64,000 nt of DNA from Thalia democratica (GCA_965202585.1 OZ241826.1:104036001-104100000), one strand, 5' to 3'; positions 1 through 63,428 are shown, counted from the first letter of the stretch. Numbers and translations: made by a program. The notes: generated by a model from the sequence alone, not told the origin.

Positions 1-59
1 ACCTGGTTCAACCTTTTCAGTTGTCGTAGTTACTTTAGGTCTTTCCGGTGAAGTCGTGG
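1..59 (-). CDS. Start of another 33-bp PTS exon, cut off by the window edge
   Basis: CTTACAG acceptor at 60-61, phase 1; reads TTSPERPKVTTTTEKVEPG. Confidence 0.8.
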
Positions 60-3000
60 CTGTAAGTTAAACAACGCACTCTAATTAAGATTCAGATAGT
101 TTTAATATAAGATATGGATAAGTTTTCAGAACCTCAAAAGCTAGCATAATCTTTTTAAGTGCAAGTAAATGTTTAGTACTTAAATTAATCAGTAGACGAA
201 TTTGTCATTATACTTTACTGAAATACACAATAGTTGAGTAAGTTGTAGAAAAATTTAACTAAGTTTCTATCTTATTGTTTAAATGTTTTTATTTTAAGTT
301 TGACTTCATACTTGATAAAAAATTTGCATTTAACACATACTAGTAACGTCAATGCTGCACAATTTTCTTCCAATTTCCTCCACGCTTTGTGACGTCATAG
401 CACTCGGGTCTACGTCGATCACTAGAGTGTGCGGTTCTTCTGCCAACATTTCACGCTTCAATTGTAACTTTGTGACGTCATCGTCAGGCACATCGGTTGC
501 CATGACAACCACGGCGAAGGTGCGGTACTTCCTCACACCCTCTCCGGAGTGGATGGTGTCGGTGACCAGGTCGAGGGCCGGTGAGAGGTAAACTTTACCG
601 TAGGTCGTCGTGGGCGCTGTCATGGTGATGGACTCGATGAGATGCCGCGCCATTTTCGGTGTTTCTGATTGGCGAAGGCTCACCAGGGTTTTGGGGCCGG
701 ATGAAAATTGAATGATCGAGAATCTTGTTCTGGTTGGCTGCAAGTTTATTAAATACTTTAATTAAATACATTTGTGCATCTAGATATTTTTGAATCTTAA
801 AGAAACATTTTAAGTTCGTTTTTAAAAAGTAAGTTAAGTATAACAGACAAATAGTAAAATTTTTATAGATTTTAATTAGAAATATCTTAGATTTATAATC
901 AAATTTATCTTTTAACTACATTATAAAAACTTTAAACTTAAAAATGTAGTTTCAAACATATAATCCAAAAAAAATTGTACTAACCTGTACATCCATCTTC
1001 TGAATTATTTCTCTTATCACGCTCTTCACAGTCGCAATCTTACTGGCTGATGACGTCTGTCTCCTGTCCAATAGGAACACGATATCCATGGGTTTCGAGC
1101 AGAACAGCTGGCTGGGTGGCAACTCAGTGACTGGTGTCTTCGGTTGCCTAGTAACCACATCGATTTCAGTGTTCTGGCAAACATCTTTCCACAAGATGGC
1201 AGCTACTTGTTTCGCCTTCACTATCAGGTTCTTTAGTCTGTATAGTATTAATTTATTATTAATATGAAATATTTCTATCTTTAGAAAATTTGATAATACC
1301 TATAAAATTTTATTTAATTATAGTAAAAGTTTTCAAATTAAGTTAATTTTCTTACGAGCAGTTTCACTCTCAGCAATGATCAAAAAAAATGTTTATTATA
1401 TTTAAAAACAAGTATTAATAACAATTTGTATAAAACAGCTTTAAAGATTTAAGAAGCACAAGTTTAGTTTAAATATATTTTAAACAATAATTTTGATTAG
1501 CTTATTGTAATTTTTATACAATTTTTTGTTTTTTGAAATTTACAAAACTGTTTGCCTTTATTGTTAGATAATACCTTAAAGTATGTTAGATATGCTAACA
1601 AAACCTTTAAACAACTGTGATAAAAAAATCTTTTAAGTGAAGATATTTTCAAATATGTTAAACCGAACAACAAAGTTATTTTTTACTTTTCATTGTAATC
1701 ATTTACAAACCTCTTAGCTTTGATGAATTTACCGATGTTGCTCAACCTTCTGTCACCTATAAAAAGCGCGTCGTCAGTGACAACCGATATTACTTCAACC
1801 CCATTCTTCAAAACTCCTTTCAACTTCTCAACCGACAACAACCTCTCCTTCTTCGGTTTCCTCCTTGCTACGAACATCACCACCTTAAGAACATCTTCCT
1901 CGTTTCTTCCGTTTTCTTCAAGGTAGTTTGTTGCAAAATCGAGGGTGTCTTTGTAGTTGACTGGTCCGCTTTGCGTTTTCGGTTTTATTTTGTTGACTAA
2001 ACCGTCAAACGACTCTTTTGTGGTTTCCATGCCGTTGCTAACCACTTTGGTCTTCTTACCCATGGTTGTTATGACGATGTTGACCTGATCCGGTCTGATC
2101 AGTATAGACCCGCTGAGCTCCAACAGGAATTTTTTGAGGAACATAACGCTCTTGGGGTGACCCAGGTAGAGGTCGTCAATGACAACGGCGATGTCGAGCT
2201 TGCAGGGCATCGTTGGCACCGGTGGGGGAATTGTGGTTGTCATGGGAACCGTTTCCACGGGTTCCTCCGCGCACACCAGCTCCAGTATCTCGTACTCGAG
2301 TCCCTTCAGGTCGTACAGACGCCTCGCAGGAACCGCTCCGTAGTTCATTGTGGAAAGGAGGTCCATCTGCTTGCGAGGCAGACTGAAGCCACCGATGTAG
2401 AATGTGATCACAGCAACACCTTGTGATTTGGCGTCCTGTATGGCTCCAATGACGTCATCGTAGCTGTCTCTGCCGTACAGCATGACTACATAGTTGCTTT
2501 CCTGCCCCGTAACTTCCGGTGTCGACCTCGAAACGGCGTACCTGACTGCCCTTCCCGCGTTCGAAGGGTTGAAAGGTACTACATCGTGGCTCGCAGACCC
2601 TAAACTCTGGTACAGTTGATTTACCGCTATCAAGTCTTTGGTTTCGACAAAGAATTCCGACTTTGCTGTTCTACCGAACGCGACTCCTTCGAACTGGGTG
2701 GCTCTGGAGTAAGTGGAACCATATTGCAATAGCTTCATTATGTTTTTTACGAACAAGTTTACTTTACGCCCGTCTCTCATCGGCGCGAACAACGCTACGT
2801 CGTAGAGGAACGTCATCTGGCCAGTGGGGCACGTCACGTTCTTTGGTTCGATTGTTTCCGTGACGACGGGGGTAGGGGTGCAGGCGATTGAGACGACTTC
2901 GCCCGCAGTAGCACCCAAGTATTTGTCGTCGGTAATGTGAACCTTGTGGTAGTCGTGGCTCTCCGCGAATGTTGGGAGGAAGTAATCCGTTTCCACGGTA

Positions 3001-6000
3001 ACCGCCACCACGGTGACCTGAAGACTCTTGAGAACCTTCATCGCTTTTTCGACACCGTTGGCATCCGACGGTTTGCCCGAAACCACGACCAAGACTCGCC
3101 TGGCGTTGGTGTGAGATTTTCTGAAGTGCTTGGCGGTGAGTTGCAAAACTTTCAGCATTTTAAACTCGCCTTCGGTGATAATGTTTGTAACTGTTTGCTT
3201 GTAACTACTGTAATCAAGTGTCAGTTCTTCGTCACCGAAAAGCGTCATCGGGCTTTCGAAACCCACCGAGGTTGAAACAGTGGTGAAGAAATCAACCAGG
3301 CCCACTTTGTTTTTGATTCCGGTGTCCACGGCAAATATCATCTCCATCTGTGCGTCGCACACGTCCAAACCAGCAGGTATCTTTGGAGTCCTGCAGGCAA
3401 GTTCCAAGAACGCCTTGCTCTTGCTTATCACCTTCTTCGGCCCGACATCCTTGTCCATTTTCAACGATCTCTTTAGCGGACCTTTGACTCTGTGGTCAAT
3501 TATGATGTCAGAGTTGGGAGAAATTACTATCGATGTGAAGTTTTTAGCCGAAAACTCTTCGATTGTTTCGACCATTTTTTCTTTTCCTTCTATCGTTCTG
3601 CCCGTGAGTACGAGAACAACTCTTCCCGCCGGTACAGGCCGCTTCGTGAAGATGCTCTCCCTTTGCACGAAGTCCAAGGTGGTTGTGAAATCTACGGATT
3701 CGGGAAGATCCACCTTGTTTCCGTCCTCGTCCACCAATCCTTCGTGCTTCAACTTCCATATAAGGTCAGTCAACCTCGCGTCTTCAGATGATTCGTACAC
3801 TTTAGGTGGTTCCCCGTCTTCGTGGAGAACTATCTTGGTCCTTATCTTCTCGTTACCCTCGATGTCTATCTTGTCAACTATCAGCAGCGCGAGATCCGAC
3901 AACGCGAAAGACTCGTGGCTCCTCAGAGACTCCTGATCGACAATCACGACGAAGTCGGCCACCATGTCGTCCTTGCAGGGCAGCTGGAACTCCTCGGGAA
4001 CTTCAAAGTTCTCGCAAACGGCCTTCAACGTCTTCCTGCCGCTCATTGCTAGTGACGTCATACCTGCCGTGGGGATGTACAGTTGCGGGGACGAAGAAAG
4101 GGTCCTGGCAGTTCTACCGGCAGCGTGCTTGTCGTCGGTCACCATGGAGATTGTTATGTTGTTGTCGTAGATTGTTTTTCTAACCGATCTGGCAACTGGG
4201 CTCAAGTGGCGTAGTATCATCATCTGGATGTGAATTTATAAGATGTCATTTTTGCTTTTGTTTTTTAAACTTTTTTGATAAATTACTAGAAAACCTTTAA
4301 TAAATAATTAAATAATAGTGTATACTTATCACATAAATTTCAAGATAAACAGAGGTTTACTATATACAGTATACAAATAATAACAAAAATATCAGGTTAA
4401 TGATAACTGAAAATTATAAACTTTTATGATTCAAAAGTAATAATTCAATTTGAAAATCAATCTTATATATTTAAAATAACAAATTATGTTCATTATTTTA
4501 ATAAGCACTAGAAACAAATTTTAATTTTAATATAACTTCAGAAAAGAAAAAATAACAAATAAGTCAAAAATGTAACAATAATACTTACAGAAATAACAGG
4601 CTTTGACCCTTCATAAGAGTTCATTTCTAGTTTGTTAAAAGCGTCCAACAAGACAGATGTGGTGTTGATACTTTCTTGTAAAGTATTGCGTTGTAGGCTA
4701 GAAATAACTTGTATTTGGCTGATTATTTGTACGATAATTTCTTCTTTTGTTATTTTTCCTACTGAGTTGTACTCTAGCAACGGGTTTACTACTTCATTGG
4801 CTATGGTATAAACTGAAAGCTGAAAAAAAATGTTTATAAATGAGGCTAAAGTATAAGGTGACAAAAACAGTTATGTTAGCCTTAAACAAAGTGTAAAAAT
4901 AGTTTAAATACTTATTAAACTGAAAAAAAAATATCACCAACCTATATCAATTTCAAAATCTAAAAATTTTACTTGTATAAAATAAACTTATATAACTTTC
5001 AACTTTTAATCTTTTTTTTTTGGGATTTCAAGTAATGTAGTGTAGTTTTATTATAAGCTTATTTGTATGGAGTATATTAATATTTTCCAGTAATTTTATT
5101 GATAAATCATGCTTAAAATACGAATACTGTATTATATTGTGACAAAACATACATGGACACTGTTTTCGGAAAGCTCCAAGCTTTCGAAAGCGTTTTTAAA
5201 ATACATCTGAAGAGCTTGGTGCGATTGTGCTTGAGGCTCCCTTGATATATAACTTTCATCAATCAGGTAGATGAGGTTTGATTTAATGCTACAGACTTTG
5301 ACTAGAGGTAATGTTGGTGCTAAAGTAAAATGTAAGTTAAGAATGAAAGCACATTACTAACTATAAATAAGTAAAATTTTACCAGTTGAAACATATCTAG
5401 TAGAAGTAGTGGTTTTAGATCTTCTAGTAGTAGCTTCTGGTTCGACCTTTTCAGTTGTTGTAGTAACACCTAGTTCGACCTTTTCAGTTGTTGTAGTAAC
5501 TCCTGGTTCAAGCTTTTCAGTTGTTGTAGTAACGCCTGGTTTTATCTTTTCAGTTGTTGTAGTAACACCTGGTTCGACCTTTTCAGTTGTTGTAGTAATA
5601 CCTGCTTCAACTTTTTCAGTTGTTGTAGTAACACCTGGTTCAACCTTTTCAGTTGTTGTAGTAGTACCTGGTTCAACCTTTTCAGTTGTTGTAGTAACTC
5701 CTGGTTCAATCTTTTCGGTTGTTGTAGTATCGCCTGGTACGACCTTTTCAGTTGTTGTTGTAACACCTGGTTCAACCTTTTTAGTTGTTGTAGTAACAAT
5801 TGGTTCAATCTTTTTAGTTGTTGTGGTAACACCTGGTTCAATCTTTTTAGTTGTTGTAGTAACACCTGGTTCGACCTTTTCAGTTGTTGTAGTAACACCT
5901 GGTTCGACCTTTTCAGTTGTTGTGGTAACACCTAGTTCGACCTTTTCAGTTGTTGTTGTTGGTCCTGGTGAATCTTCAGGTGCTTTAGTTGTTGTAGTCA

Positions 6001-9000
6001 ACAAAGCAGATGTAGTCGCTGTTTAAAAAAATAATTTAAAACTGTGAACACCTATAATGAACTACAACAGTTATTAGATGTTTTCTGTTAATACAAGTTT
6101 AATTTATAATAGCGATCTTTCTAAATTTAGTATTTCTTAATATACTGTTTAGAACAAAATATTGTTCTGTTTTTTTTAAACTTATATAGAAACAAACAAT
6201 TTTTATTCTATATATAAGAGTTATACAAGTCATAAGAAGCATTATAATGATTGAAATAAGTATACCAACGAACTACCAATTTAAAAAACATAGAGTACTA
6301 TGCAAGGTAAAACTTACTTATGGGCATTCTCAGATTGCACAACTCTTCAACAAGTTCATCGGCTTTCTCTTGCAATAAAAGATCTTCTTCTTGTATCTCA
6401 AACACATTGATTCCTTTTTCTTCCAACAATTCGAAAGTGGCCTCTTCATCATCAAATCCAGATCTGAAAATTTGAAAAAAAAATTTCAGTTTACTACTCT
6501 GGCTGTAAATACAAATTTACTACTCTAGCTTTAACAAAAAAAAAAGCACAATCTACAGTTAGTATATGCGCATATTTTATTAATGGATATAAAAGGACAG
6601 ATTGCTAAATTTTGTGCTTTACCTTTTTTATACTTGGTTCCAAGTAAAGAAGAAGAATGTAAAATCTTGATATTTTTGTACAAAACATAGTATTACGTAA
6701 TAAACAAAAATTTAAATAATTTTCAAAAAAGACGATAAAAGTATTAAAGCGCAAAATAATTCTTTTCAATTAATTTTAAAACTTTTTGAGTTCAAAAAAT
6801 CAAACCTGTGCACAAAGACGATTGCCTTGGGGACTCCCCTCCTAACCCCGTCACCTAGCAACACGAGATCGGCAACCGACTCAGCAGCGACCGCGGGGTT
6901 GGACAAGTCCTCGCTAGGTGGCGCAACAACCCGGATGTTGGTGTGGATGTTTTTCCTTGACTCCATGACGTCACTGCTGTTGTCGAACGTGATGAGTTCC
7001 TGGTGGGCGGATCCGTACTGAACTATTGAGAAACGCGTCACAGAAGGCTGTTTAAAGAGGTAAATTTATATTTAATAAGTTCAATACTATTTATTTAAAA
7101 GAAATCAAATCACAATGTACTGAATAACAAAAAGTATCTCTATGCTGACTGATAAAATATTTTAAAAACGTTTTGTAGACTTCTTTTTAAGTATGCAAGT
7201 CAAAAATGAATTTTAAAGTTCTACAGTAAAATGAATTAACTTTGGAACTGAAAAAAGTGTATTTTGTTAGTTTTAGAAAAACGTTTTAGTCTGAAAATGT
7301 TAAACACAACTTTAACTGTTACGGAAGCAAAAAAAAACTTGGAAAAAATTCATAGACCTTTCTTGTTCACCATTGTAAAAACCTAATATGTAATGATAAA
7401 TAGTTGTTTACACTAATGCTAGGTTTACAAACGTTTTTAAATCCTTTAAAGTATTTTTATACCACACTAATTGTGTTGCTTTTGCATATATGTAGTTACC
7501 TGCACATCAAGTTTCAGCACGACAGCAGCTAGGAACGCTCTCGCATTGTTGACATCGGTGATTGTAGTCAACAACCTCCTGTCAACCACAAACGCCACGT
7601 CCATCGCCACACTGCAGTGAAACTCTCCCTGGGGTTGCGGCGGTAATTCAGTTTCGGTGGAGGGGAAACCCTCAAACGTGCACGCGTCCTTCCACACGAA
7701 CTCCGCCACGTTCTTGGCGAAGTATGGCAGGTATTTCGTTCTGTTTTAAAAAGTAACTTGCTAAGTTATAAATTTATATTATTAGCTTGTAGCACTTCTG
7801 ATAAAACTAAATGTATTTTACTAGTAATCTTAAAACATTAAATGCTAAATTGAATTAAGGGTTTTAACAAAAACAATAGTTAGTGGTTTTTCGGTTTATA
7901 ATTGAATTTTTAATTTAGTTCATTTGTATATCATATTGTGTTTAACTTTGTGTTTTCATTTAAATTATGTTTATATATATACAACTTATCTTAAAGTTTT
8001 GAATATAAGCTTATTTTCTTTTTCTCTTTTTGTGTGTCCTGTTTAAGTGGCTCAGGTTTTGATGCCTGAGTCCAACATTGCACAATAAACAATATAATAA
8101 TAATAATAATACAGTTATTGAATTTACTGTTAAGTATCATTAGTGTTTGTTAAATTTGAATCTCATTGACTTTATATTCTTAAATTTTAATTGCATGTAT
8201 ACCATCACGACAAATTTTAAACACTAGCAATTAAAACTATTTTTTTTAACTTAAAACACCTATAGTAGCTTAAATCATTCATAACAAACTTGTGACTGCT
8301 GAATGATTTTTCCATGTTTGTCAACGACGAAGTTGGTATGGAAGTGGCGTCCGACGCGGTCAGTGACGTCATAATGATTCCTTCGTCTGACGTCTCCTGC
8401 ACCTTGCTGGGATCCAACAAGTTGTAACCCCTCCTCTTCAGTATGAAAACGATGATCTTCTTCACATTCGGTCCCTGCCTACCGTAATCCTTGAACATCT
8501 CGTTGGCCTGATCCAGCGCTCCCACGTACGAAATGGGCCCCGTAGCCGACTTGGGCCTCAGCTTTCTCTTGTACAGTTTGGTGAACAGCTTCTTGTTGTC
8601 CGCCATCTTTTTGAACAGGTCCCGGATTTTCTTGCCGAAAGCGATCACGCTGATCTGCGTCTGATCGGGCCCCATCACCAGCTGCTTGCTCACTTCCTTC
8701 ATGAACTTCCTGATGGCTCTCAACCCGGTGATGGTGTGACGTAGCAAGTCGTCAACCGCGAATATCAGGTCTACCTGACACGGTTCGGTGGGTTCCGGGG
8801 GAGAAATAGCCGGTGGGGGCGTCGGTTCGACAGGCGAAGACACGCAGCTGAACTCCAACAGTTCGTACTCCAATCCTACTAACTTATAAGACCTGTCAAC
8901 TTTGATGAATCCGTAGTTTTTAGTTGTTAGTCCATTCTCGTTTTCGTACTTGATACCTCCTATTGAAACCGTCAGCACGTCTACGCCACTCTCCTTGGCT

Positions 9001-12000
9001 AATGCCACCGCTTCGTGAAGATCGTCGAAGCTGCTTCTACCGATGATCAAAATGACCAAGCTCTTACCACCCTTGCTACCTTGCACCACCTTCTTCAGCG
9101 CCTTGCCAGCCATCGGTGGATCGCTCTTGACGTTCTCGTGACTCATCGTCTCCAGCTTGTGGTAGGCCCTCGCGATTGCAATGCTGTTGCTTGAACTCTC
9201 GCTAAAATCTTTCACTTGGTTCGAACCGAATCCCACTCCGGTGAATGTTGAAGCTTGCGCGAACGACGAGGATTTTCCGAACACTTCCATCGCTCCCTTG
9301 ATGAACGCCGTCACCCTTCTGCCATCTCTCTTTGGTGTGAACAGCGAAACGTCGTACAGGAAGGTTATTTCCCCTAAATCGCAAGCCTTGCTGGGAGTGG
9401 TTGGAGGTTGTGGGATGAATACAGGAGCGCAGGCAGTTGATACGACTTCTGATACGGCGAACTGAAGGTATGGGGTATCTGAAACGACGATTTGCTTGTG
9501 CTTTATCGCGATTTCAGTTTCTGGCAAGAAGTACTTCGTGCCGACTTCGACTGAAACTAGAAGTACGTCAAGTTGACCGAGTCTCGTCAGAATGTCCTCC
9601 AAGTTTTCAGAGTCGCTTGGGTTTTGTGTTAACACAACAACGACTCTCACAGCTTGAGACGCGCTCTTTTCAAAGTAATCTGCAGCCATTGTGAGTGATT
9701 TTACCCCAGGGTACTCGTCTTCTACATCTGGAACAACTTCTACTAAACTGTAATCAGCTCCAACATCAACATTTTCTGAGTTTGTCGAGTACACGTTCGG
9801 TTTCACACCTTCGTAACCGATCTTTGAAGACATGAGTGAGAAGAACTTGTTTAAGTCAGGTTTGTTTGCGTCATCTTCGTACAAACTACCGTCGAGGACG
9901 AACACCAGGTCCATCTCAGCCTCGCAAACGTCTTTGGTAATTTGTTGTTCGGGTGCTGAGCAAACAGCAGTGAAAACTTGCTTGGTCGCGTCAAACACCT
10001 CGGGCAGGTTTCCTGAAACTGGCATCAGTACACCGTGAGTGTTTTCACCACCCTCAGGTAGGAAACCGACTTCAGGAGCGATAAAGATCGTGGTCACGTC
10101 GACACTTTGCAGCCTGTTTAGCTCATTGCTGAACCTTATTGACTGCTGAACGTTTCTAGAAGTGATTGAAATGATGCTTTTTGACTTCGCGGTGTAGCTT
10201 CTCGACAAAACTGGGTGACTTCTCAGGTAGTCGAAAGTTGGTAGGAGATCGACTTGATCAGGAAGATCTTTACTAGATTTATCCAAGGTTGATTCGTACC
10301 TGAGCTTCCACAAGATGTCCTCAAACGTCTTGTCCACGTTCGTCAGGTGCACCTTCGGGGTTTCCCCATCTTCATGCATGACCAGGGCCGTCCTCGTGTC
10401 CCTATTGGTCCCTGACAATGATGTAGCAATCTGCATCGTCATGTCAACCATGACTCTCGCGTCTTTAGCCAGGAAAGTTGAAGTGTCAACTACCAGTATA
10501 ATGTCAGTTTCAACAGTGTCTCGACAAACGAACACTTCTTGTGGTTGCGGCACGGCCTCGTCGCAAACAGTAGTGACAATCTTCCTCGCCGCGTCTACCA
10601 TCTGCACGTTACCTATAAATGGCACGTACAAGTTTGATGATGTAGCCAATGTTCTTGCTGATGAACCTGCGCCCGACCTGTCGTCAGCAAAAACTGACAC
10701 TCTGACGTCATTGTCGTAAATTCGCTTCATCAGATCGTGCGATGGTTGCTGTAGTTCTCTTTTCGTTAGTACCTGTAATTTTTTGTTGGGTATCTCTTTA
10801 AATGCATCATAGGATACAGCAGTATAAAGCTATGTATAAAGTATAATGTGAAATGCCTAATTTTAGATACGTTGTAAAAATTGATTATGTTTAGTATCTA
10901 AAAAAACAAAAAATACTTTGGTAGAAACACATTATAATAATAGCAGTAAAATGCAGATATTCTTATTTTAAGTTAAATTGGCTCTTTGTAATAATTAAAC
11001 TAACTATAGTATGCTTAAGTATATTATGTCTATGAATAATACAACAAAACTAACCGTAACAGCTTTTGTGACATCACCAGGTAGCGATTGGAAGCTGTCC
11101 AAGGCGTGCGTCATCAAAACTTCTGTATTTAAACTTCCAGTGTATCTCGTTTGTGATGTTTCAACTTCGATGCCATTCGTGACGTCACTGATGAACTCAT
11201 CCGTGTCCATTTCGTTGTAGAAAGACACGAAAGGTTCGATCGTGTCTTCCTTCACTATGAACACGTGCACCTGTTTGTAGGTTTTTTTTTTGCATTTATT
11301 TTCATTTAGTTACTAGCTAAGACATTAAGTGTTTAAACTTGTAAAACCTATATAGCAAGTTTCGAAGCAAATGTTGGTTTTTAGTTTTAAAAAGATGTTT
11401 GGTACTTTTCAACTTTACTCGTCTTCGCATATAAAATTATTGAAAGGTTGCATTATTTCATTACACGTTTTTGCAGCATTTTGGTTACAATTATAACTTT
11501 CTTACTGAAATTTAAGTACTACTTACCCTTACTGTATCCTGAGAAATGACGAGGCTGCCAAAAGCATCACTGAAGAAAAGTTTCAGGGCCGATTTCATGT
11601 CTCCTGCGTCAGTATCAAACAACGATGCATCGATGTAAAACACGTAATCTGATCTGACTTCGCATCTGTATGGCTCTGTATGAAAATATATTTTAACTAT
11701 TAACCTCAATATTTAATTGCAGTAATTGCTTTGAAAAACCTTTAGGTCCTATCTTATGAGCAAAACTTACTAAGTTGTAAGAAAAATAGTTTATAAAAAT
11801 ATTGTTTTAGAAATATAATTGTTAAGATTATCTAACTACATATCAGCTCAATTTAAATGGCCAAAGATGTGTTTTAATGTTATAAAGTTTTTTAAATCAT
11901 TTAAAAAATTTTAAATATTCAAAAATAAAACTAATGTAATACACAAACCTGTAGTAGTACCAATAACAGAAGAAGGTGTAGTTGTCTTAATAAGTTCTTC

Positions 12001-54000: not shown

Positions 54001-57000
54001 GCTTTCGTTATACATGAAGTGTGTTGAAATTTATTGAAGCTGTTATTTATTTATCTTGAATGCTATTAGCTACTTGAATGTCAAAAATATTTTTAAATTA
54101 AAAAAAAAAACGTTTATTTTTGTTGTATTGTAAAAGCGAGGTATGTTTTATAAAAGTTTTAGTAGACTTAGACTTAAATGTTTTTCAATATTACATAATT
54201 TTTCACCTTTCTGGCTGCTGACTTGACAAGGATCGGGGATTTTATTTTTAGTCATGAAATTATGTTCTATACAATCCGAACTCGTCTTCCAAGATCTTGT
54301 AAAAGATAATGCATCGTTTTCAATCAGTCCTGTGTTTTGTTTTATTAATAATAAACATTGCTGTATTGCTAATTGAACAAGTTTTTCAAAAATTTCAAAA
54401 TAAATTTAGAGTTGTTGAAAATTGCGTTTTTGTAAAAAAAATACTAGATTTTATTTACCTAAGCTACCGTGAAAAAGATTAATTAAGCTTAGTTAATGTT
54501 TTGAAAATATATAATATATTAACAGAGCTTGACTCAGGGTTAATTTTTACAGGTTTTAATGTACAAAGATTTAAATAAAGTTCTTACCATTGTAACTTTG
54601 CATATCGTCTTTTTGATTTGAATTGTAATTTCCACAAAGACCACACAACTTTCCGTTCCATCTGTATATTTTTTACTTAACTTTAATAATACTTGATATA
54701 ATTAAAATGTCTATAGTGATACCTAATTGTTCAATGTTTTATCAGGAAATAGTTCTAAAACTTTCGTCAAGGCAGCATAACAAACCAAAATAATTTTAAC
54801 ATTAAGACCATAGCAACTTAAATCTATTTGGTAATTTTTAAATAAATGTTTGAAAATTTCAATGTTTTTCTTTTTAATATGTTTTTCTTAACAAACTTTC
54901 TAAAGAAATAAAATTAATCAACAGCAATTAAAACTAAAAACCTGTTATCAGCTTTCACGTAAAGTCTGCTTTCTCCATCCCAGTCAATTGTTACACCGAT
55001 ACTCAAAATTACTTGCACAAATAATGATGACACTTTGTAGATTTGTAGTGTGTCTGTAAAATACATTAATGCTTTACTACAGGATATCGATGTAAGTTTT
55101 TGATTAATGTGATTTTTTGGAACGTTTAGTGTTTTTTTGAATTTTTGTTACAAATGATCAAAGGATATTCTATAATATACATTTATATTGTTATCAATAC
55201 AATTGCAACATTTTGTTTATTTATTCTACAGATAAAAAAAGATTTATAATAGTCATATTTTAATCAAACCTCTAGTAAACGGGGCGACAATTTCTTTGCT
55301 GTTAACTTCGATGATGTGGTTCTGGGACAAACTGACGATAATCGGGTCGTTATTGGGGTCAGGTCTGTACACAATGACCACATTTTTGGTGCACGTTGAT
55401 ATACCAGTCGCCCCGCACTCTGTACTGTCTATTATCACTCTGTTGAAAAATGAAAATGTTTTTATAATTATATAATTTGATAAACTAAAAATAAAACAAT
55501 AGGTTAATACCCGTTAAAATTTTTCATAATACTGAATTTACCCTTTCTACTGCTTTTTTACCATTCTAAATAGAAAAATTAAACAGTTTAAATTTTTTTT
55601 TTATTATGAAATTTATATTTACAATCACCTAAACTTTTATATACTGTTTAAATATCAACATAGAATACCAACGTAAGAGTTATAACAGTCAGTGGAAAAA
55701 GTGTACAGGTACTTATAAATAAGAACTAATAACAAAAACAATAAAATATACTACGACAATAATTTATACATTTAAAAACAAACTTAAAAGTAGAAATGTC
55801 GTTGTAGCAGTCTTTGGCAAATGTGTACTGACACTTTAATAGAAAAAACGTATGAAAAAATAAAATAAAATAAATCTTACGTGAATGTAGGAATGTCATT
55901 AAAGCAGTCCTTGGCAAAAGTGTACTGGCACTTTAATATAAAAAACATGTGAAAAAAAATTAAAATAAATCTTACGTGAATGTAGGAATGTCATTATAGC
56001 AGTCCTTGGCAAAAGTGTACTGGCATATTGATATAAAAAACATATGAAACAAAAAATCTTACGTGAATGTAGGAATGTCATTAAAGCAGTCCTTGGCAAA
56101 AGTGTATTGGCACTCTCCTGACTGGAGACGAAAATGGAGTTTGTCGAAAGTGTGAATGTGGGAATTACCCGTGACCGAGCATTCTGATGAGCACTCTGTT
56201 GCGTCACATTCCCACACTGCCGCTCTGCATGTACTGTAAACAAGTTTGTCAAATTAAACATTAAAGCATTAAATTTAAAATAATGTTAATATACAACGCG
56301 GCTGTTGTAGGATGAAAGGTTAGTTAGCTTTGTTTCAATTATTATTAGCAAGTTTGTAAAAAATTTTATCAAATGATTAATATATTAGCAATTGTTTTCT
56401 AGTTAAATGACAAACTTGCGTTGTTTGGATAGACAAAGCGGCTCGCATTTGCTGTTGTTGGATGAAAAGTTTTCTAAATTTAATCAATTTGGAAAAAGTA
56501 AGCTCAATGTTGCTACTAGCGGATAAAGTTAATAAAACGTTTTATTCTTACTAAACATGGGAAAAATTTTAATTTGTTCTTAGTTAAGGCTGAATGGTGT
56601 ATCTTACTACGTTTCGTATCACACAAAGTAGTAAAAAGCAAAAAATGGTTACTTACTTGAGTGTTATAAAAAAAAATCAACATTGTATATATTATTGTTG
56701 TTTACCATACTCGTTTGCCATTTGTTACCAAAAGTAAAATAAAGTAATAAAAAATTTAAAATGGTTATTTCTTTGAGTATTTTAAAAAAATATATCAAAA
56801 TTTTTAAATTTATGTTATTTACTCGTTCGCCATCTGTTACCAAATACTCACCATGAACTGCACTCCTGCTTGAGTACCGACCCACTCTTGTACTCCACCC
56901 CGTTGTGGGTGCACGGGCACTCTTCAGCTTGCAAACACTGCCCCCTGTGCAAGTACGTGCCATCAGGACAACTGCACCCGTCCACGCAGTGACGTTTGCA

Positions 57001-60000
57001 GGGTTCGTGGGGGGTTAGCAGGTGCTGGCATGTTTTGGGGCAGCTGGAGCCACACTGCTTGTAAACCATACCGTAGTCGCATGTTTGTTCTGTATATTAA
57101 ATAGTGTTAAGTATATATTATGCCATCCAAATTAATCGAACAATTATTTATTTTACTGCGACTATCTATAATTCCTTCACATTCAACTTTTAGATTAATT
57201 AAAAAACTTAAGTGTCAACAGACCTAAAACAGAAGCGCAGCACAATAAGTAAAGTTATAATTTTGTTTTTAGTTATATTAAGTTACAAATTAAACTGTTT
57301 TTCAAAATCTCTTTTTAGATTTTTCAAGCTACTTGTTTATATAGATTTATCACGGCTAAAAACTCATTTAAAAGCTTTAAAAACTAAAAAACTGTATTTA
57401 CTTATTAAAGTTTACTTATAACAGAAAAAACTTGTACTACTACTACTTGTTCTTAAAATACTCAGTACATATATACTATATCTAACCACAAAAACCGCGA
57501 GTTCTCCAATTAGCATCGAAATCAGTTTGGAGAGAACACTGTCTTAATATTATTTACTTACACTTATATCTTACTAACCACAAAAACCCCTAGTTCTCCA
57601 GTTTGCATCCAGGTCAGTTTGTAGTGAACACTGTCTGGCGTATTGAGCAACTGAGTCACAATGGCACCCTTCTTTATTTGTTTTCTGCTTGTTAGAAAAA
57701 CAATGAGTTTGTGTGGTATGCTTGTTTATGGTAATAAGTATAACGAAATTTATTTGAATAACAATAAATAGTTAACAAAATCCATAAAGGACGAAACATT
57801 GTGTCATATTAATAAACTTTGGTAAAATAGTTATTAGTAGTACTCTTTTGTGTAAAAACCTCTCAGCTCTACTGAAATATAACATACAGTACTTACAATT
57901 ACACTAACCTTACATTTACAAAGATCTTGCATGCAGGAATACAGGATGTTCCTGGAATCAACTCCAGATTCCATACAACCTCTAAATGCCTCATTTCTTG
58001 CAATAAATATCTCACAAATCGTTTTGATTGTCTGCATTGAAAAAAATGCATAAGTTGTGTTATACTTATATACCAGGAAAAACTTTCTCTTTTGCTAGTT
58101 TCAAATCATTTAAGTAAACATTGTTTATTTTTCTATTGCATTTAATAGAATTAAAGTATTTAATTATACTACAAACAATGCTATGATTAAAGTTTTTTTT
58201 TTTAATCTTGAACTGTACTATATAGAACTCTTATAGTTAAACTCACATCAACTTCGTGCTGTGAAACGCTTTCACACATGTTTGTGACGTCATAATGATC
58301 TTTACATTTCTCATGAATTCCCGCCACTTTCCAACTCTTCATAAACCACTTTACATCTGATGTTTCGGCGCCTGAAAGATATACGGTTTTATTTTTTAAT
58401 GAACTTTAAGTATGCCAAAAGGAAATTATAAATAATATATGTTCTTTACTTTGAAAACAAAAACAAAATACTTACACAATCAATCGATCATCAGCTAAAA
58501 TCAGCATAAAGTAAATTTGAAATAAATATTACAAACAGCAAACCATCAATCATATTGAGATCGTTGTATTTGTCTCCATCATTGTCGCCACAAAGACCCC
58601 CTACTACCTCATTGTTGCCAACATGAACCTCCAATGAACCATAGCCCGTCCACAGTACAACCATGTTTGTGTCACTGGTCACACGAACGTACCTTCCTAT
58701 GATGGATATTGGGGGAAGGCCCTTGATTTGTATGGGAAGCTCAGATGGTGAGTAGCTGTTATTAGGTTAACTGTAAAATTTTGTAAAAAAATGTAGTTTT
58801 TTTAAATAAAGCTTAGATTCAGAATAAATATTTAAAAACCAATTGTAAACAAATTTAATATGCTTAATCTTATTATTGATTGTTATAAGTATGATTAATA
58901 TTCTTATTATTGATTTCGAAAAGTTTAATTAGTTTTTTAAAGCACGTTTTAATACAAGCTTTATACAAAGCTTTGAAACTAACATTCTGTTTTTGTAAAT
59001 GACATATTTCTTAGGAAGAAGAGTGATTGGTTCATAAGAATGGAAATTTACTTCCAAAGCAAGGAAGTTTTCAGGTAGAAAATCAGAATGGTTGAGAAAA
59101 CTTTGCATCTAAAGTTATAAGATTGTTAATTGTATTCATAAATCAATACTTTAGTATGTTTTTTAAACTATTTCTTAAAATAATTTGTTGTATCATATAA
59201 GTTTTGTGCATATTTCAAACTTATGTATTTTTAATGGTTCATTAATAAATGAAACTACTCTTCAGCTAATTTCGAGAACCAAGCAGTTTACAGTTTTAAA
59301 TAATATAAATAAGTTTGAGACTAATTAACATAAAACTATAGTAATATCAATAAATGTGCCAACTTATCATGAATATTTTTGAGATATATCAAATAGTTTG
59401 TGCTTGACCAAAAAAGAGCAATAATTCATTTAAACTTTAATTTATAAGCTTCACACTTTTATATTTACTTTTTTTTTAACAACTTACTAAACAAGTAATG
59501 ACAATAAAAATATCATTGGGTTAATTTAAAAATAAAACTGACGGTGTTAGCCACGTGAGGGGGTTGTTCACTCAAAAACTCCTCCCCACTCCTTATCAAC
59601 TCCAAGTTGAATTTCTCCTCACTCCTGTCCACCATCAGGGTGTACCTGCACACTCCTGTGACGTCATAGTTGTTGCCGTCGAACGTCACGTGATGCCTCC
59701 CTCCCCACAAGCTGCACACCTTGTGCTCAGACGTCGTGTTGCGCACTCCTGCGGATAAAAAGTAATTTATTTTCTATCACTATACATTTTTATTATTTAT
59801 TAAAAAATTATATCATTATATTAGTTTTAATTGTTTTGTTAAAGCTTTATTTTTGGATTTTTTTTCAAACTTAATCAAAGTTAGTTTTTTAATTCTATTG
59901 AATTTTGCGCACTCCTACAATTATTATTTAATAAGGTTTTTTTCAAACAGTTTAAAGTAGAGCTTTTTTTTAGAGCTTTTTTTTCATTTTAATTGGTGAT

Positions 60001-63000
60001 TATTTTATGTTAAAATCAGTATTTTTCAATCAGAATGTGTTTTTTCAAAAGTATTTTTTTGTCTATTACTTAAGTTTGACTTTTTTTTATGTTTTTTCCT
60101 GGTCAATATTAGTTTCAAAATGAGTTTGATTAATAATCGATCACTTTTAGTTGTGTAATAAATAAACATTGATTCTAGTTAATTGTGTTAGAATATTTGT
60201 ACAAACTCGATTACGTATAAACAAATATTTTGTGACTTACTATATTGACACTGCGGTCCATGAAATTGGTCAGGACACAAACATTGGTCGGGAGCCACAC
60301 AAAATCCACCATTAAGACATGTTTCATGGCATATTGCTGTGATAAAACAATTTAAATTTTATTTGTTCTAACTAATAAAAAATAATCAGATTGGTTTAAA
60401 TAGCTGTTTGTGATATTATTTTATATTAATAAAACATCATGTTTTATCATAACTAGTTTTTAAATATCTCACATTGCTGAAATATAGATGATCACATTTT
60501 TTGTGGTACTTATATATTAGATATACAAACTTTATCACAGTTATTTTTTGTAGCATATTGCGGTGATGTAGTCTAAAGCCTTATTCATAATTTTAAACTT
60601 TCGTTGCTTATTTGTTGATTAAGAGAGTTTGCTCAGTGAAGCGCAAATATTTTTTGTACTAAGTTACTATTGGTAAAACTCTCTATTGTTGTAAAACTTT
60701 AGCATTTTTTGAATATTATTAGAAAATATGCTTTTTTTTGATTATAGTTTAACTACATACCAATTTCGCACTTATTTCCCATCCACTTTCCTCGGACACA
60801 TTGGCAAATATCAGGGGCAACACACAACCCTCCGTTTTGACATTTTTCATGGCATAATGCTATAAAAGTAATTTAGATGTAAACAATATTTTAAGACCTT
60901 ATTTTCATGACAATGCTTTACTTAAAAAAATAAATCGTCAGTAAATGATAAAATCTGGGAAAATATGGTTGATCATGTAAGAAGACATTCCGCTTAAGTT
61001 TAGTTAAAACTGTCAACAAGGCATTACTTTGAATATAAATAATAATCTATAAAAAAAAGTGTTTTAATTAAATTGAAAAATATCAGGCTAACACATATCA
61101 ACCATTTTGACACTTTTCATGAATTAAAGCTGTTTAAATTAATAAGAAAATTTTATTATACAAAGTTATGCACTTTCTTAAAGCAAAGTTGTTTTAATAA
61201 ATGGGGCATTTATCTTCCTTATTGTTTTTAAAATTAACTCGTTTTAACTTTTTGGTCAATTTTTAAGTAATGGTTTCTCATATTTAGCGCTAAAAATTTA
61301 ATGTTTTCTGAACTAGATTTATTTTTCGTTATTTAACAAAAACTTAATTTGTTTTCTGGTAAAATTAAAGTACAGCCAAACCACAAAAACAAAACTTTAT
61401 TAACAAATTTAGGTTCAAAGTACGTCATTTTAAACTCAAAACGGATATTTTTAACTTATAAACGGAATTGAACTTTGAAACAATCGGCATTAAGCCACAA
61501 TAAACAAGGCAATAGAAATATATTGGTTATTATAATAAAAAAACCTTGAGTGCAATTATTTCCAGTATATCCGATTTCACATTCGCAGTGATTGTTTCCA
61601 ACACATTTGCCGTGATCACAGGGTGGGTCGCATATTACTGTAAAGATAATTTCATTAATTATATTAGCTAGTTTTATTAACAACATTGATAGTACTAATG
61701 TAAAAAGCAAATGAACAGTTGTTGATTAAATTAAAAATACTGCTCTTCGGTTTTTTATTGGCAAAATTGTGCTTTACAAACTATGTAAAGTCGTTGAAGC
61801 ATTATTTGTGTTAAAAGAATAATATGTATTTATTTCCGTAAACTAGTTTAATAATTTTTTATTTTACTATAAGAATTATTCCAACTATGATGGTTAGAAG
61901 TAGATAAAAATGTTACACAACCAAGTTTAAAAATAAAACTAAAATTACATTTAAAAAACACATAATTTAACTAACAAGTTTGACACTGTGGCCCACTGAA
62001 ACCGTTCTTGCACTGACAAGTATTAGGTGCGATGCAAATACCACCATTTTCGCATGTTGTATTGCAAATTGCTGAAAAAGTATTTAATTGTTATGAACTA
62101 GCCATGAAAATGGTATTCAAAAGTTGTTATCTAGTTTAAGGTGTATCCAGCAAGTAAAATAATAAAATCACAGTTTTTGGTTGTATTGTAAGAAAATTAT
62201 TAACTGCCGCAATAGTTAGACTAATTTTCGTAACGATTAAGTTAACTCAGTTTCTACTCAAAGTTGAATACAAAAGTCATCTTTCGAAAAAACACAGTAT
62301 AATAATCTTATCAGTAACAAAAACAAATTATAAATTTTCATAATTTATCTCTGCTTATAAACAGATTAAATTACCACTATAAACAAGTATTAATTAAAAA
62401 CTAACCTGTATCACAAGTAGTATTTGACCATCCTTCGTTACATTTACACGAATTCGGAGCAAAACATTCACCATTCACACATTCGTTTTCACATGTAACT
62501 GTTGGTAGAATTTGTAACGATTAGTTACTGCTGTATTTTATTCATATGTACATAAAGTACTGTTTTTTTGTTGCAAAATCGTTAATTTAATGCATTGCTT
62601 TTTGTGTTACACAAAAATCACAAACAACACCATCTAAAAGAATTGTTTTTGCGCTTTTTTTGACGCAATAAACTAACAACAAAGTTGTTTACAGTATTTA
62701 AGTGAAACATCGCTTTTTCTGTATATAATACAATATTCAACTCACACTCAGTACAGTCTTTTCCAAGCCATCCTTCTACGCAGGAACATTTATTTTCACC
62801 GGAACATTTGCCATTTTTCTGGCAGGGCGGGTCGCATATTGCTGCTATGTTGTTAAATTTTAATTTATTTCTAAATACAGAACTACAATAAACATCTAAG
62901 TCGGAGTTACAAAACTTGTACGTATATAAACTTTAATTACAAGTAAACTTTTATAATTGTTTTTTTTATAGAATGATTCTTAAACTAATTATATGGTTGA

Positions 63001-63428
63001 GCTTTATTAATACAAATAGAAAGCATAAAAAACGAACATTTATTGTTAGCTTAATTTAGTTAGCACAGTTCGCAACTAAACATAAACAAATCAAATCTTT
63101 AATTAACAAGTAAGTATAATAGTTGATAACTCAAGGATAGTTAAAGCTTTAACTTTATAGTATATTAAAAAGTTAACTGTTAGAAAAATTTTTGGTTTTT
63201 AAACCAAGTTATTATGCTAATAAGTAAATCGGTTGTTTAGGTTCTACAACATGTAAAAAGTTAAAAATTAAAAATTTCTAGACGTAAATATATATAGATT
63301 ATACTTTATGTATAATAGTTAACAGACAAATATACTTACGGTCTGGCGGTTTAACGACTTTTACTTGTTTATCTTCTCCCCACAAAATATTATTTGCTTG
63401 TGCAAGCCATTGGTTCAATTTGCTGTCT
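1..63428 (-). CDS. Giant secreted VWF-like / gel-forming-mucin-like protein (EGF x6 - VWD/C8/TIL x3 plus D' - about 35 VWA with PTS mucin repeats); partial, 89 exons in window, continues past both edges
   Basis: All exons have canonical GT-AG junctions and consecutive phases match when joined by hand (33,568 nt, about 11,190 codons, no stop). No start codon, signal peptide or terminal exon is seen. Domains were recognised from motifs: EGF Cys spacing, CGLCGN, TFDG, CECFC, DxSxS...TDG. Confidence 0.9.
341..6018 (-). CDS. Super-module copy 4: PTS array + 6 degenerate VWA
   Basis: Exons 5383-6018, 5153-5319, 4589-4819, 1711-4223, 985-1237, 341-737; motif CPTGQMTFLYDVALFAP. Confidence 0.9.
5425..5960 (-). 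repeat. Coding 33-bp tandem repeat, about 16 units
   Basis: Same unit, directly visible. Confidence 0.95.
6318..12296 (-). CDS. Super-module copy 3: 10-aa PTS repeat + 6 degenerate VWA
   Basis: Exons 11949-12296, 11527-11675, 11055-11270, 8290-10772, 7500-7740, 6806-7047, 6318-6463; motif CDLGEITFLYDVSLFTP. Confidence 0.9.
11975..12255 (-). repeat. Coding 30-bp tandem repeat (KTTTPTEEVV), about 9 units
   Basis: Plus-strand unit similar to TTCTTCAGTTGGTGTAGTTGTCTTAACAAC. Confidence 0.9.
12504..20256 (-). CDS. Super-module copy 2: PTS array + 6 degenerate VWA
   Basis: Exons 18335-20256, 16670-16888, 16135-16306, 13640-15974, 13162-13405, 12504-12921; motif CPAGEITLLYDVALFSP. Confidence 0.9.
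16871..17300 (-). repeat. 66/67-bp tandem array carrying 7 copies of a splice acceptor plus the first 18 nt of the exon
   Basis: Acceptor AG (plus-strand CT) at 16889, 16956, 17022, 17088, 17155, 17221, 17287. Confidence 0.93.
17305..17720. repeat. Intronic AT-rich 36-bp minisatellite, about 11 degenerate units
   Basis: Unit similar to TTGTATGATATTTATGATCTTTTATACATAAAAAAG. Confidence 0.85.
18590..20220 (-). repeat. Coding 33-bp tandem repeat, about 49 units
   Basis: Same unit, directly visible. Confidence 0.95.
20326..25924 (-). CDS. Small Thr-rich exons plus three VWA domains (first has intact MIDAS DSSSS...TDG)
   Basis: Exons 25868-25924, 25556-25618, 25067-25200, 24566-24802, 23871-24117, 23486-23616, 23055-23229, 22592-22737, 22097-22382, 21729-21853, 21319-21555, 20773-21001, 20326-20436. 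Confidence 0.84.
26394..33460 (-). CDS. Super-module copy 1: PTS array + 6 degenerate VWA
   Basis: Exons 31017-33460, 30725-30949, 27579-30073, 27122-27362, 26394-26844; shared motif CPAGEITFLYDVALFSP. Confidence 0.9.
31165..33450 (-). repeat. Coding 33-bp tandem repeat, about 69 units, with higher-order duplication
   Basis: Same unit as 44740-46180; rare variants recur at a 738-bp offset. Confidence 0.95.
33980..36867 (-). CDS. Thr/Lys linker, VWA with near-intact MIDAS (DSTSS...TDG) and a degenerate VWA
   Basis: Exons 36416-36867, 35950-36189, 35339-35573, 34819-34946, 34476-34653, 33980-34243. Confidence 0.86.
37084..39656 (-). CDS. Degenerate VWA (3 exons) plus a probable 30-nt micro-exon
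   Basis: Exons 39529-39656, 38118-38289, 37456-37725, and 37084-37113 (TTTTTACAG acceptor, GTATGT donor, phase 1-1). Confidence 0.8.
38595..39476 (+). mobile_element. 5'-truncated Penelope-like retroelement fragment (C-terminal GIY-YIG endonuclease region and 3' end), antisense within an intron
   Basis: Frame 38701-38997 reads NKYVNSTELSKLIHKLKNEG...WKILEK...CKLCLKEAL.I...INKKSELMGSCRHRNKFLL, which I recognise as the PLE endonuclease tail. Flanked by a 14-bp direct repeat TAGTCTAAATACTA (38581-38594, 39477-39490). Has poly-T and (CT)n tracts and a hammerhead motif near the 3' end. Confidence 0.8.
39404..39447 (+). ncRNA. Minimal type I hammerhead ribozyme motif of the kind found in PLEs
   Basis: CTGAAGA (39407-39413); stem II GA.TT.GAC-TATCT-GTC.TT.TC; GAAAC (39433-39437); AGCT; GTT cleavage triplet. 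AACAGCTGTT is a perfect palindrome. Stem I has only 3 bp, so activity is uncertain. Confidence 0.6.
40020..40694 (-). CDS. PTS mucin exon with a 9-aa repeat (VVTTSTEE/KP)
   Basis: Phase 1-1 exon of 675 nt, open frame, 27-bp tandem unit. Confidence 0.88.
40100..40570 (-). repeat. Coding 27-bp tandem repeat (VVTTSTEEP), about 17 units
   Basis: Plus-strand unit GTTGACGTGGTAACAACAGGTTCTTCT. Confidence 0.9.
40959..43636 (-). CDS. VWA with intact MIDAS followed by a degenerate VWA (6 exons)
   Basis: Exons 43509-43636 (DVLFLVDTSSS), 43114-43347 (GGSTFT...IIITDG), 42553-42799, 41973-42118, 41518-41725, 40959-41213; phases consistent. Confidence 0.87.
43947..47479 (-). CDS. 3.5-kb exon: two degenerate VWA domains, a 33-bp PTS array, a third VWA domain and a Thr-rich tail
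   Basis: ORF 43906-47472; acceptor TTTACAG at 47480, donor GTAAAT below 43947; VWA first strands ADIAVVIDS, SDLYIMWDKS, DNIVILG. Confidence 0.9.
44740..46180 (-). repeat. Coding 33-bp tandem repeat (VTTTTEKVEPG), about 43 units
   Basis: Plus-strand unit ACCTGGTTCAACCTTTTCAGTTGTTGTAGTAAC; unit count is span/33. Confidence 0.95.
47746..51778 (-). CDS. D3 assembly: VWD3 - C8 - TIL - E, then a Pro/Thr linker
   Basis: Exons 51634-51778, 51236-51386, 50729-50946, 50164-50274, 49723-49854, 49202-49358, 48533-48697, 48179-48296, 47746-47931. Motifs YGEAHYTTFDG, GETCGLCGNFDG, YDSCTCDEGGDCECFC...WRTPDICP...CTWHYKEC, closely matching VWF/MUC2-type D3. Confidence 0.92.
48781..48816 (-). pseudogene. Intronic copy of the acceptor plus 5' part of exon 48533-48697
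   Basis: TTACAG then ALMCVEFNNKNL; parent AAACAG then ALMCEEFNNKNL. Confidence 0.8.
52012..52651 (-). CDS. D' region (TIL' - E')
   Basis: Exons 52550-52651 and 52012-52159: CMPGEVYKSC...CRATC...CEPGCGCPDG...CPCFHGG. Confidence 0.88.
52437..52496 (-). pseudogene. Intronic copy of the 3' half plus donor of exon 52550-52651
   Basis: 60 nt with 3 differences from the parent, all synonymous; separated from the parent by a 53-nt spacer containing (AT)n. Confidence 0.85.
52499..52518. repeat. (AT)n microsatellite
   Basis: Directly visible; lies in the spacer between an exon and its half-exon copy. Confidence 0.8.
52863..56233 (-). CDS. D2 assembly: VWD2 - C8 - TIL
   Basis: Exons 56063-56233, 55270-55439, 54942-55053, 54588-54661, 54207-54329, 53735-53953, 53079-53319, 52863-52939. 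Motifs CSVTGNSHIHTFD, WNGKLCGLCGNYN, CMFQACQC...WRKDDFC, QVYQQCGSSCQSTC. Confidence 0.9.
55784..56025 (-). pseudogene. Three intronic copies of the 3' end plus donor of exon 56063-56233
   Basis: Copies at about 55976-56025, 55881-55932 and 55784-55835; each ends in a GT donor in the same phase. Confidence 0.85.
56852..59748 (-). CDS. D1 assembly: VWD1 - C8 - TIL
   Basis: Exons 59543-59748, 58984-59108, 58544-58755, 58247-58371, 57909-58031, 57579-57684, 56852-57089. Motifs CSLWGGRHHVTFDG, GGLCGDNDG, MVYKQCGSSCPKTC. Confidence 0.88.
57487..57544 (-). pseudogene. Intronic copy of the 3' half plus donor of exon 57579-57684
   Basis: Reads RQCSLQTDFDANWRTRGFC then GTTAG; parent reads RQCSLQTDLDANWRTRGFC then GTTAG. 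Confidence 0.85.
60241..62844 (-). CDS. Six single-EGF exons
   Basis: Exons 62746-62844, 62406-62498, 61976-62071, 61545-61637, 60761-60859, 60241-60336. All are phase 1-1, 93-99 nt, and encode six-Cys EGF patterns, e.g. ICDPPCDHGKCVGNNHCECEIGYTGNNC. Confidence 0.92.
63340..63428 (-). CDS. First visible exon (DSKLNQWLAQANNILWGEDKQVKVVKPPD), linker before the EGF array
   Basis: TTCAG acceptor and GTAAGT donor; 89 nt, phase 2 in and phase 1 out, which matches the next EGF exon. Confidence 0.7.

Follow-up and report, generated by a model that had tools for sequence, protein, structure and literature searches.

A tunicate gene predicted to fill a mucin/VWF scaffold with both PTS arrays and a large VWA array

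We analysed a 64,000-nucleotide (nt) stretch of the genome of the tunicate Thalia democratica (OZ241826.1:104036001-104100000, assembly GCA_965202585.1), hereafter the window, whose coordinates count from its first letter. Its minus strand carries about three quarters of what is probably one gene for a giant secreted protein of the order EGF-D1-D2-D′-D3-(VWA+PTS)-CysD-D4-VWC-like-cystine knot (CK), a reading to which we assign a probability of roughly 0.75. Together with the flanks, of which 30 kb below and 10 kb above the window were examined, the whole gene would cover ~85 kb and ~110 exons and encode 13,000–14,000 amino acids. What appears to be new is a full mucin/VWF scaffold with both PTS and a large VWA array in its centre: we found no paper describing a D3-(VWA+PTS)n-D4 protein, in agreement with an original prediction for this window, which had recognised no named family in the architecture. 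That prediction had further proposed a D1-D2-D′-D3 head behind six EGF repeats, ~35 VWA domains and mucin arrays. These elements were all recovered: the head by the order of its Pfam matches and by residue matches to solved VWF and MUC2, the EGF repeats as six exons, the VWA domains as 30 confident and five weaker calls, and the mucin arrays as Thr-rich tandem repeats.

Within the window, drawn from a genome of ~800 Mb, GC content swings between ~42% and ~30%, and all long open frames with coding-like codon usage lie on the minus strand. Long open reading frames (ORFs) on the plus strand were rejected as coding because they coincide exactly with the Thr-rich tandem repeats, which they read in antisense. 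An Rfam search of the window gave no match. Exons were chained by a dynamic-programming program that combined codon log-odds, trained splice matrices and a homology bonus. The first gene models lost small exons or inserted tiny spurious ones; four models yielded proteins of 12,500–13,800 amino acids, and the two best of these show regular phase patterns. The best models comprise 101–110 exons and 13,000–13,800 residues, with no in-frame stop over more than 40 kb of exon sequence, and ~76 exons with ~10,100–10,700 codons fall in the window. EGF and PTS exons have phases 1-1, and the VWA exon triplets follow a 2-0/0-0/0-1 pattern.

The predicted protein begins with six EGF-like exons spread over 60241–62841 (62746–62841, 62406–62498, 61976–62071, 61545–61637, 60761–60859 and 60241–60336), each with six Cys and each matched by Pfam EGF_2/EGF. 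Single-exon Pfam matches then place three successive VWD-C8-TIL sets in the canonical order, the third VWD being preceded by an additional TIL′: VWD1 (at 59.7 and 58.7 kb), C8 (57.7 kb) and TIL (57.0 kb) in D1; VWD2 (56.2 and 55.0 kb), C8 (53.9 kb) and TIL (53.3 kb) in D2; and TIL′ (52.1 kb), VWD3 (51.7–50.3 kb), C8 (49.3 kb) and TIL (48.6 kb) in D′-D3. At exon level, the D1 assembly (56852–59748; Pfam and VWF matches) consists of VWD1 (59543–59748 and 58544–58755), a post-VWD exon (58247–58371), C8-1 (57909–58031 and 57579–57684) and TIL1/E1 (56852–57089). The D2 assembly (52863–56233), called on the same kinds of match, holds VWD2 (56063–56233, 55270–55439, ~54917–55147 and 54574–54672, the last with CGLCGNYN), C8-2 (53735–53953), TIL2/E2 (53079–53319) and a Cys-rich exon (52863–52939). 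The D′ module, TIL′/E′ (52012–52651; exons 52550–52651 and 52012–52159), is identified by Pfam and a solved-chain match, and the D3 assembly (48179–51778; Pfam and MUC5AC/VWF matches) contains VWD3 (51634–51778, 51236–51386, 50729–50946 and 50152–50373, the last with CGLCGNFDG), C8-3 (49723–49854 and 49202–49358), TIL3 (48533–48697) and E3 (48179–48296). D3 closes with a Cys-rich segment in a linker exon (47746–47931), which then passes into a short Pro/Thr stretch.

Comparison of the head exons with solved chains gave a divided picture. The TIL1/E1 exon aligns to VWF residues 294–368 and the TIL2/E2 exon to VWF residues 650–721, each with 122 bits (against 69 and 79 bits, respectively, for mucins), and TIL′/E′ likewise scores higher against VWF (68 versus 51 bits). 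C8-3 aligns both to MUC5AC 1087–1134 and to VWF 1078–1126, and the VWD1, C8-2 and C8-3 exons have better bits against FCGBP, MUC5AC or MUC2 than against VWF. The head is thus, as judged from sequence, that of the mucin/VWF superfamily, and its branch (mucin or VWF) cannot be assigned from the present data. A CGLCG motif stands at the end of both VWD2 and VWD3; VWD1 has GGLCG, in which the first Cys of CGLC is absent. VWF has CGLC motifs in both D1 and D2. No furin-type R-x-K/R-R motif follows D2 in any frame of the D2-D′ exons, the sole such motif of the model being in the VWA array.

Two 'exon echoes' were observed within the head. In the intron next to the D′ exon 52550–52651, a second copy of the 3′ half of that exon (peptide GVGIACRATCQNPNHDCYA) is found at 52432–52524, and 3.5 copies of a 95-nt unit at 55790–56114 run across the end of the first VWD2 exon. 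Such echoes may mislead gene finders.

From 47479 down to position 1, the exons consist of VWA-type domains and PTS arrays. The first VWA-type module lies 270 nt past the last D3 exon, and such modules run on to just before D4, the first two being called from weak matches. Both kinds of module already occur together in the first exon of the region (43934–47479, ~1,180 codons), a single ORF holding two divergent VWA-like modules (47463–46330), a PTS array of ~45 units of 11 amino acids (46326–44727), a VWA domain (44673–44205) and a Thr-rich tail. It is followed by five three-exon VWA domains within 33980–43625 (43625–42553, 42118–40959, 39656–37456, 36586–35339 and 34946–33980), with interspersed PTS exons at 40020–40694 (9-amino-acid unit) and 36416–36774. 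Next comes a PTS exon of ~64 units of 33 nt (30989–33442), whose 3′ end, from 31187 onward, forms the beta-A strand of the next VWA, continued in 30725–30942 and in the next big exon. That exon, U1 (27579–30073), is the first of four exons of ~2.5 kb in the window (U1–U4) that each encode the tail of one VWA domain followed by four complete, Cys-bracketed ones. The VWA group at 20773–27362, called by hidden Markov models (HMMs) and the gene model, comprises one VWA with a short PTS (27362–26394) and three-exon VWAs at 25200–23871, 23616–22592 and 21853–20773.

The remainder of the window repeats this alternation. PTS exons at 18335–20436 (20326–20436, and 18335–20256 with ~48 units of 33 nt) precede VWA pieces (16670–16888 and 16135–16306) and U2 (13640–15974), which together occupy 13640–16888. 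The second of these PTS exons ends, at 18460, in the beta-A strand of the next VWA, an arrangement also seen at 31133, and in both cases the domain is completed in later exons. Then follow a VWA (13162–13405 and 12504–12921) and a PTS exon with a 10-amino-acid unit (11949–12296), within 11949–13405; VWA start exons (11527–11675 and 11055–11270) and U3 (8290–10772), within 8290–11675; a VWA (7500–7740, 6806–7047 and 6318–6463) and a PTS exon (5383–6018), within 5383–7740; and a VWA start exon (5153–5319), an uncertain middle exon near 4598–4812 and U4 (1711–4223), within 1711–5319. A two-exon VWA found by the HMMs (341–1237; exons 985–1237 and 341–737) and the start of a PTS exon (1–59), which leaves the window and reaches ~−968 in window coordinates, complete the series.

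Tandem Repeats Finder reported eight arrays with periods of 27–33 nt in the window. The main PTS unit, VEPGVTTTTEK (33 nt), is present in 103 exact copies in the model, and in the whole model PTS sequence amounts to ~3,500 amino acids, about a quarter of the chain, in about a dozen Thr-rich arrays; Thr makes up 13.7% of the whole chain. Pfam matches to 'Apolipoprotein' A1/A4/E of up to 118 bits, above the family threshold, fall on the PTS arrays at 18320–20284, 30855–33470 and 43909–47529. We rejected them as spurious products of the 11-residue periodicity; automatic annotation could mislabel PTS exons as apolipoprotein. Different from the PTS arrays is an in-frame low-complexity exon rich in Gly, Ser, Tyr and Asn (GDDTDYNGMFNSTSYYGGPGNGSLSNGS...) between two VWAs at 22097–22382.

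VWA domains were counted with two HMMs, one built from this gene, which was slow to converge, and a general one built from collagen VI-like matches. Applied to the spliced model, they detected 30 domains in the window and seven beyond it at E < 0.01. Support for five further domains in the window comes from a beta-A strand motif, weak hhalign matches or a language model, so that the estimate is ~35 domains within the window and ~43 in the gene as a whole. VWAs outside the ~2.5-kb exons are spread over three exons each. At 28 junctions of the array we found the pattern Cys, a Pro-rich linker of 8–30 residues, Cys, beta-A strand, so that each VWA would be bracketed by Cys. A full MIDAS motif (DxSxS) is present in only two domains, as DTSSS in the VWA at 43625 and as DSSSS in that at 25200–23871. 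The model contains neither an RGD nor any run of five or more Gly-X-Y triplets, and Pfam Collagen had no match on the big exons.

The VWAs resemble collagen VI rather than VWF A domains. In phmmer searches of all solved chains, the best relatives were collagen VI alpha-3 (E 8e-19) and integrin alpha-1, and no VWF A domain appeared at E < 0.01. An AlphaFold model of U3, built with 23 aligned homologues, has four alpha/beta domains and a mean predicted local distance difference test score (pLDDT) of 71.6. Foldseek matched it to PTMP1 (a two-VWA mussel byssus protein), collagen VI alpha-3 N2/N5, integrin I domains and VWF A1/A3; the likeness to VWF A domains in fold is a generic one. Only 62 matches came back from a search of 1.8 billion representative proteins, the close ones being metagenome ORFs and the distant ones collagen VI-like proteins. 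When 70 retrieved VWA proteins were searched by phmmer with the head and tail models, no VWD scaffold was found in any of them.

Below the window the gene extends for a further ~21 kb, to a CK ending near −20,790. The PTS exon that crosses position 1 is followed by a fifth four-VWA unit (U5, interrupted by one intron) and by more VWAs and PTS arrays; in all, 7–8 VWA domains are added below the window. Near the C-terminal end of the VWA/PTS array, at −8208 to −8783, lies a CysD-like module, the only one in the gene. After it come a last VWA and PTS, then D4 (VWD-C8-TIL), five or six VWC-like modules and the CK, with Pfam matches in the flank to VWD, C8 and Cys_knot. The CK matches the CK of VWF alone among solved chains; the D4 VWD exon has no relative among them at E < 0.001. 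With CysD, D4, VWC-like modules and a CK at its C-terminal end, the predicted product would be a polymerising secreted scaffold, and the original prediction, which had read the architecture in this way from the head and centre, gains support from the flank.

At the other end, we found no coding sequence between 62842 and 64000, a stretch that is mostly a 109-nt tandem repeat, and no signal peptide inside the window. The only exon above the window with the required phase is one of 43 nt (64613–64655), with the sequence MKSFNFFVLTVILT and an in-frame junction to the first EGF exon; it is a candidate for a signal peptide of 15 residues. A tandem array from 63384 to 64000, running on beyond the window, fills the gap between the first EGF exon and this candidate leader exon (109-nt unit, 216-nt super-unit, 91–96% identity). 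Of two claims about extent made from the window alone, each held in part. The frame is open at the low edge, where the PTS exon runs through position 1, but not at the high edge; and a length of more than 11,000 amino acids slightly exceeds the ~10,700 found in the window, while the whole protein, at ~13,800, surpasses it.

Comparison with other organisms bears on whether the exons are maintained. Between U3 and a contig from Tara Oceans, the ratio of nonsynonymous to synonymous substitution rates (dN/dS) was 0.058 at dS ~1.4, with unalignable flanks, which shows strong purifying selection on the four-VWA exon. Ocean metagenomes contained exons 72–89% identical to U1, U3, U4 and U5 and distant ones (34–46%) for U2, U3, U4 and U5. 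In a maximum-likelihood tree every one of the five four-VWA units groups with its respective orthologue (100/100 support), and the five-fold duplication is therefore older than the split of these organisms. No four-VWA unit was found elsewhere in this genome. Large multi-VWA exons that share ~25% identity with the four-VWA unit also occur in metagenome and Logan contigs, accompanied there by other VWA ORFs in the same orientation; they may belong to this gene family in organisms more remotely related. A tested 6 kb was covered at ~45x, over exons and introns alike, by DNA unitigs from two public runs, perhaps of the same sample as the assembly, which show two haplotypes. Over this segment (46201–52200) the unitigs carried two haplotype-like sets of variants, and the differences cluster in exon 46588–47476 and in the C8-3 exon 49215–49367.

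We infer a single transcript from the exon phases and from the domains that are split across exons. The phases chain without stops over all exons; a single head and a single tail flank the centre in the order usual for mucins and VWF; within the centre there is neither an ATG with a hydrophobic leader exon nor a terminal CK module; exon 43934–47479 joins VWA, PTS and VWA in one frame; and many VWAs are divided between adjacent exons, several of them starting at the 3′ end of a PTS exon and finishing in the next big exon. The same features, among them a 110-exon chain consistent in frame, argue against two or more separate genes on this strand, such as a short gene for EGF-D1-D3, at least one for VWA/PTS and another for D4-CK, in which case the giant protein would be an artefact of reading across them; besides, a headless or tailless product would match no known functional form of the mucin/VWF family (PMC9169620 and established accounts of mucins and VWF). 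This division is quite unlikely in our view, even though the splices joining D3 to the first VWA exon (47746 to 47479) and PTS to D4 are predictions only. Less probable still, and hardly credible to us, is that the locus represents a relic, decaying or unexpressed, or that repeated DNA was misassembled there: long near-identical PTS tandem repeats are indeed poorly handled by assemblers, but the open frame over >40 kb of exon sequence, the low dN/dS, the orthologous exons of all five units that are open in other organisms and the two-haplotype unitig coverage all speak against it. Several points nevertheless weigh against a single giant protein of the proposed order. Every splice junction, and the single-transcript claim with them, is predicted from genomic DNA; boundaries of small exons vary between gene models, so that their ends are approximate; the lengths of the PTS arrays depend on the assembly; and the signal-peptide exon is a candidate outside the window. 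The two exon halves of the CysD-like module match complementary halves of PF13330 (Mucin2_WxxW) at E 0.062 and 0.011, below the gathering score, and the VWC modules were called by motif and one weak Pfam match. Finally, the first two modules after D3 had no Pfam match, no solved relative and no database homologue; their VWA call is based on hhalign (E 0.0016 and 0.007) and language-model neighbours, and single-sequence AlphaFold was unusable (pLDDT 38).

A different question is where the VWAs of this one gene came from. If the gene were a tunicate orthologue or co-orthologue of vertebrate VWF, its VWAs would stem from the same insertion as the A1–A3 domains of VWF and would later have been amplified and mixed with PTS. 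VWA-type modules directly after D3 and ahead of D4-C-CK, as in VWF, TIL/E exons far closer to VWF than to mucins by bits, a CK matching that of VWF alone and the terminal Cys pairs of the VWAs all fit such a descent; VWF A1 and A3 carry terminal Cys pairs too. Against it stand the VWAs themselves, which match collagen VI alpha-3 and integrin alpha-1 rather than any VWF A domain and have collagen VI-like proteins as their nearest database relatives, the better scores of VWD and C8 exons against mucins and FCGBP, the lack of a furin site after D2, and the CysD and PTS, which are mucin features; moreover, bits on exons of 50–100 residues do not amount to phylogeny. We therefore consider orthology with VWF unlikely and mildly favour a scenario in which the VWA domains were acquired independently of VWF. 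An equally doubtful idea is that the gene descends from a pre-vertebrate ancestor of VWF, a mucin scaffold that already had VWAs between D3 and D4 beside PTS. If true, A domains would have entered a mucin before vertebrates and blood clotting existed, serving first in mucus or matrix adhesion in filter feeders.

For the single giant protein favoured here, homology with MUC2 and VWF suggests a mode of assembly, and polymerisation is a sound inference from that homology. Chains would dimerise tail to tail through the CK, and the dimers would then be joined head to head through D3 disulfides into long linear polymers. O-glycosylated PTS stretches would form stiff, hydrated spacers, and the clusters of disulfide-stapled, mostly MIDAS-less VWAs on short Pro-rich linkers could act as protein-binding beads, cross-linking the polymer internally or with other components of the matrix. 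As for its role, our guess is a structural or adhesive mucus, such as a pharyngeal feeding net or a coating of gut or tunic.

One non-coding feature of the window deserves mention. In an intron at 16871–17305, a 66-nt tandem repeat (6.6 copies, 98% identical) is followed at 17306–17718 by a 36-nt repeat in 11.7 copies.

Mucins and VWF are regarded as one scaffold whose centre is either PTS or VWA (Nakashima et al. 2018, PMC6109156; Javitt & Fass 2022, PMC9169620), and VWF, defined by its VWA domains and without an invertebrate orthologue (Lang et al. 2016, PMC4948705), as a vertebrate invention. Here the sister group of vertebrates appears to combine both within one complete scaffold and at very large size, which would imply either an independent entry of VWAs in tunicates or a pre-vertebrate stage of VWF. 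The gene is also a concrete candidate to encode the backbone protein of the mucous filters of tunicates, for which one recent proteomic study obtained no mucus-specific peptides (bioRxiv 10.1101/2025.01.21.634085), and its product would be a natural design for a polymer alternating bottle-brush spacers with adhesive beads.

Among known proteins, gel-forming mucins of the MUC2/MUC5AC/MUC5B type share with the predicted protein the head, central PTS arrays, a putative CysD-like module, D4, VWC-like modules and the CTCK, and MUC2, MUC5AC and FCGBP give the highest scores for its VWD and C8 exons. Unlike in these mucins, ~43 VWAs are set among the PTS arrays, six EGF repeats precede D1, CysD occurs once and PTS accounts for just a quarter or so of the chain. 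Within tunicates, Ci-GFM1 and CiVWFL of Ciona belong to the same scaffold family. The CiVWFL genes are endostyle-specific (PMC8462739). Ci-GFM1, which we compared by its published description alone, has D1-D2-D′D3, D4, VWC and CK in 2,880 amino acids and differs in its chitin-binding domain, its PTS of 50 residues and the absence of a VWA array (PMC6109156). Oikopleura house proteins have VWD or VWA, in separate proteins. Vertebrate VWF resembles the predicted protein in its scaffold, in VWA-type domains between D3 and D4, in TIL/E and CK sequences that are the closest among solved chains, and in CGLCG in VWD2 and VWD3; it differs in having three A domains rather than 43, and the VWAs here are closer to collagen VI than to A1–A3. 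Large PTS arrays, a CysD, the missing furin site after D2 and a VWD1 without the first Cys of CGLC further separate the two. With collagen VI alpha-3, matrilins and PTMP1, the predicted protein has in common tandem, mostly MIDAS-less VWAs, for which collagen VI alpha-3 is the best match in sequence and PTMP1 and collagen VI N2/N5 are the best in fold. In collagen VI-type proteins such arrays mediate the binding of matrix proteins; here there is no triple helix, and the VWAs sit in a VWD/CTCK scaffold with PTS, in more than twice the number (~43 versus 18–19) found in the collagen VI-like proteins that we retrieved.

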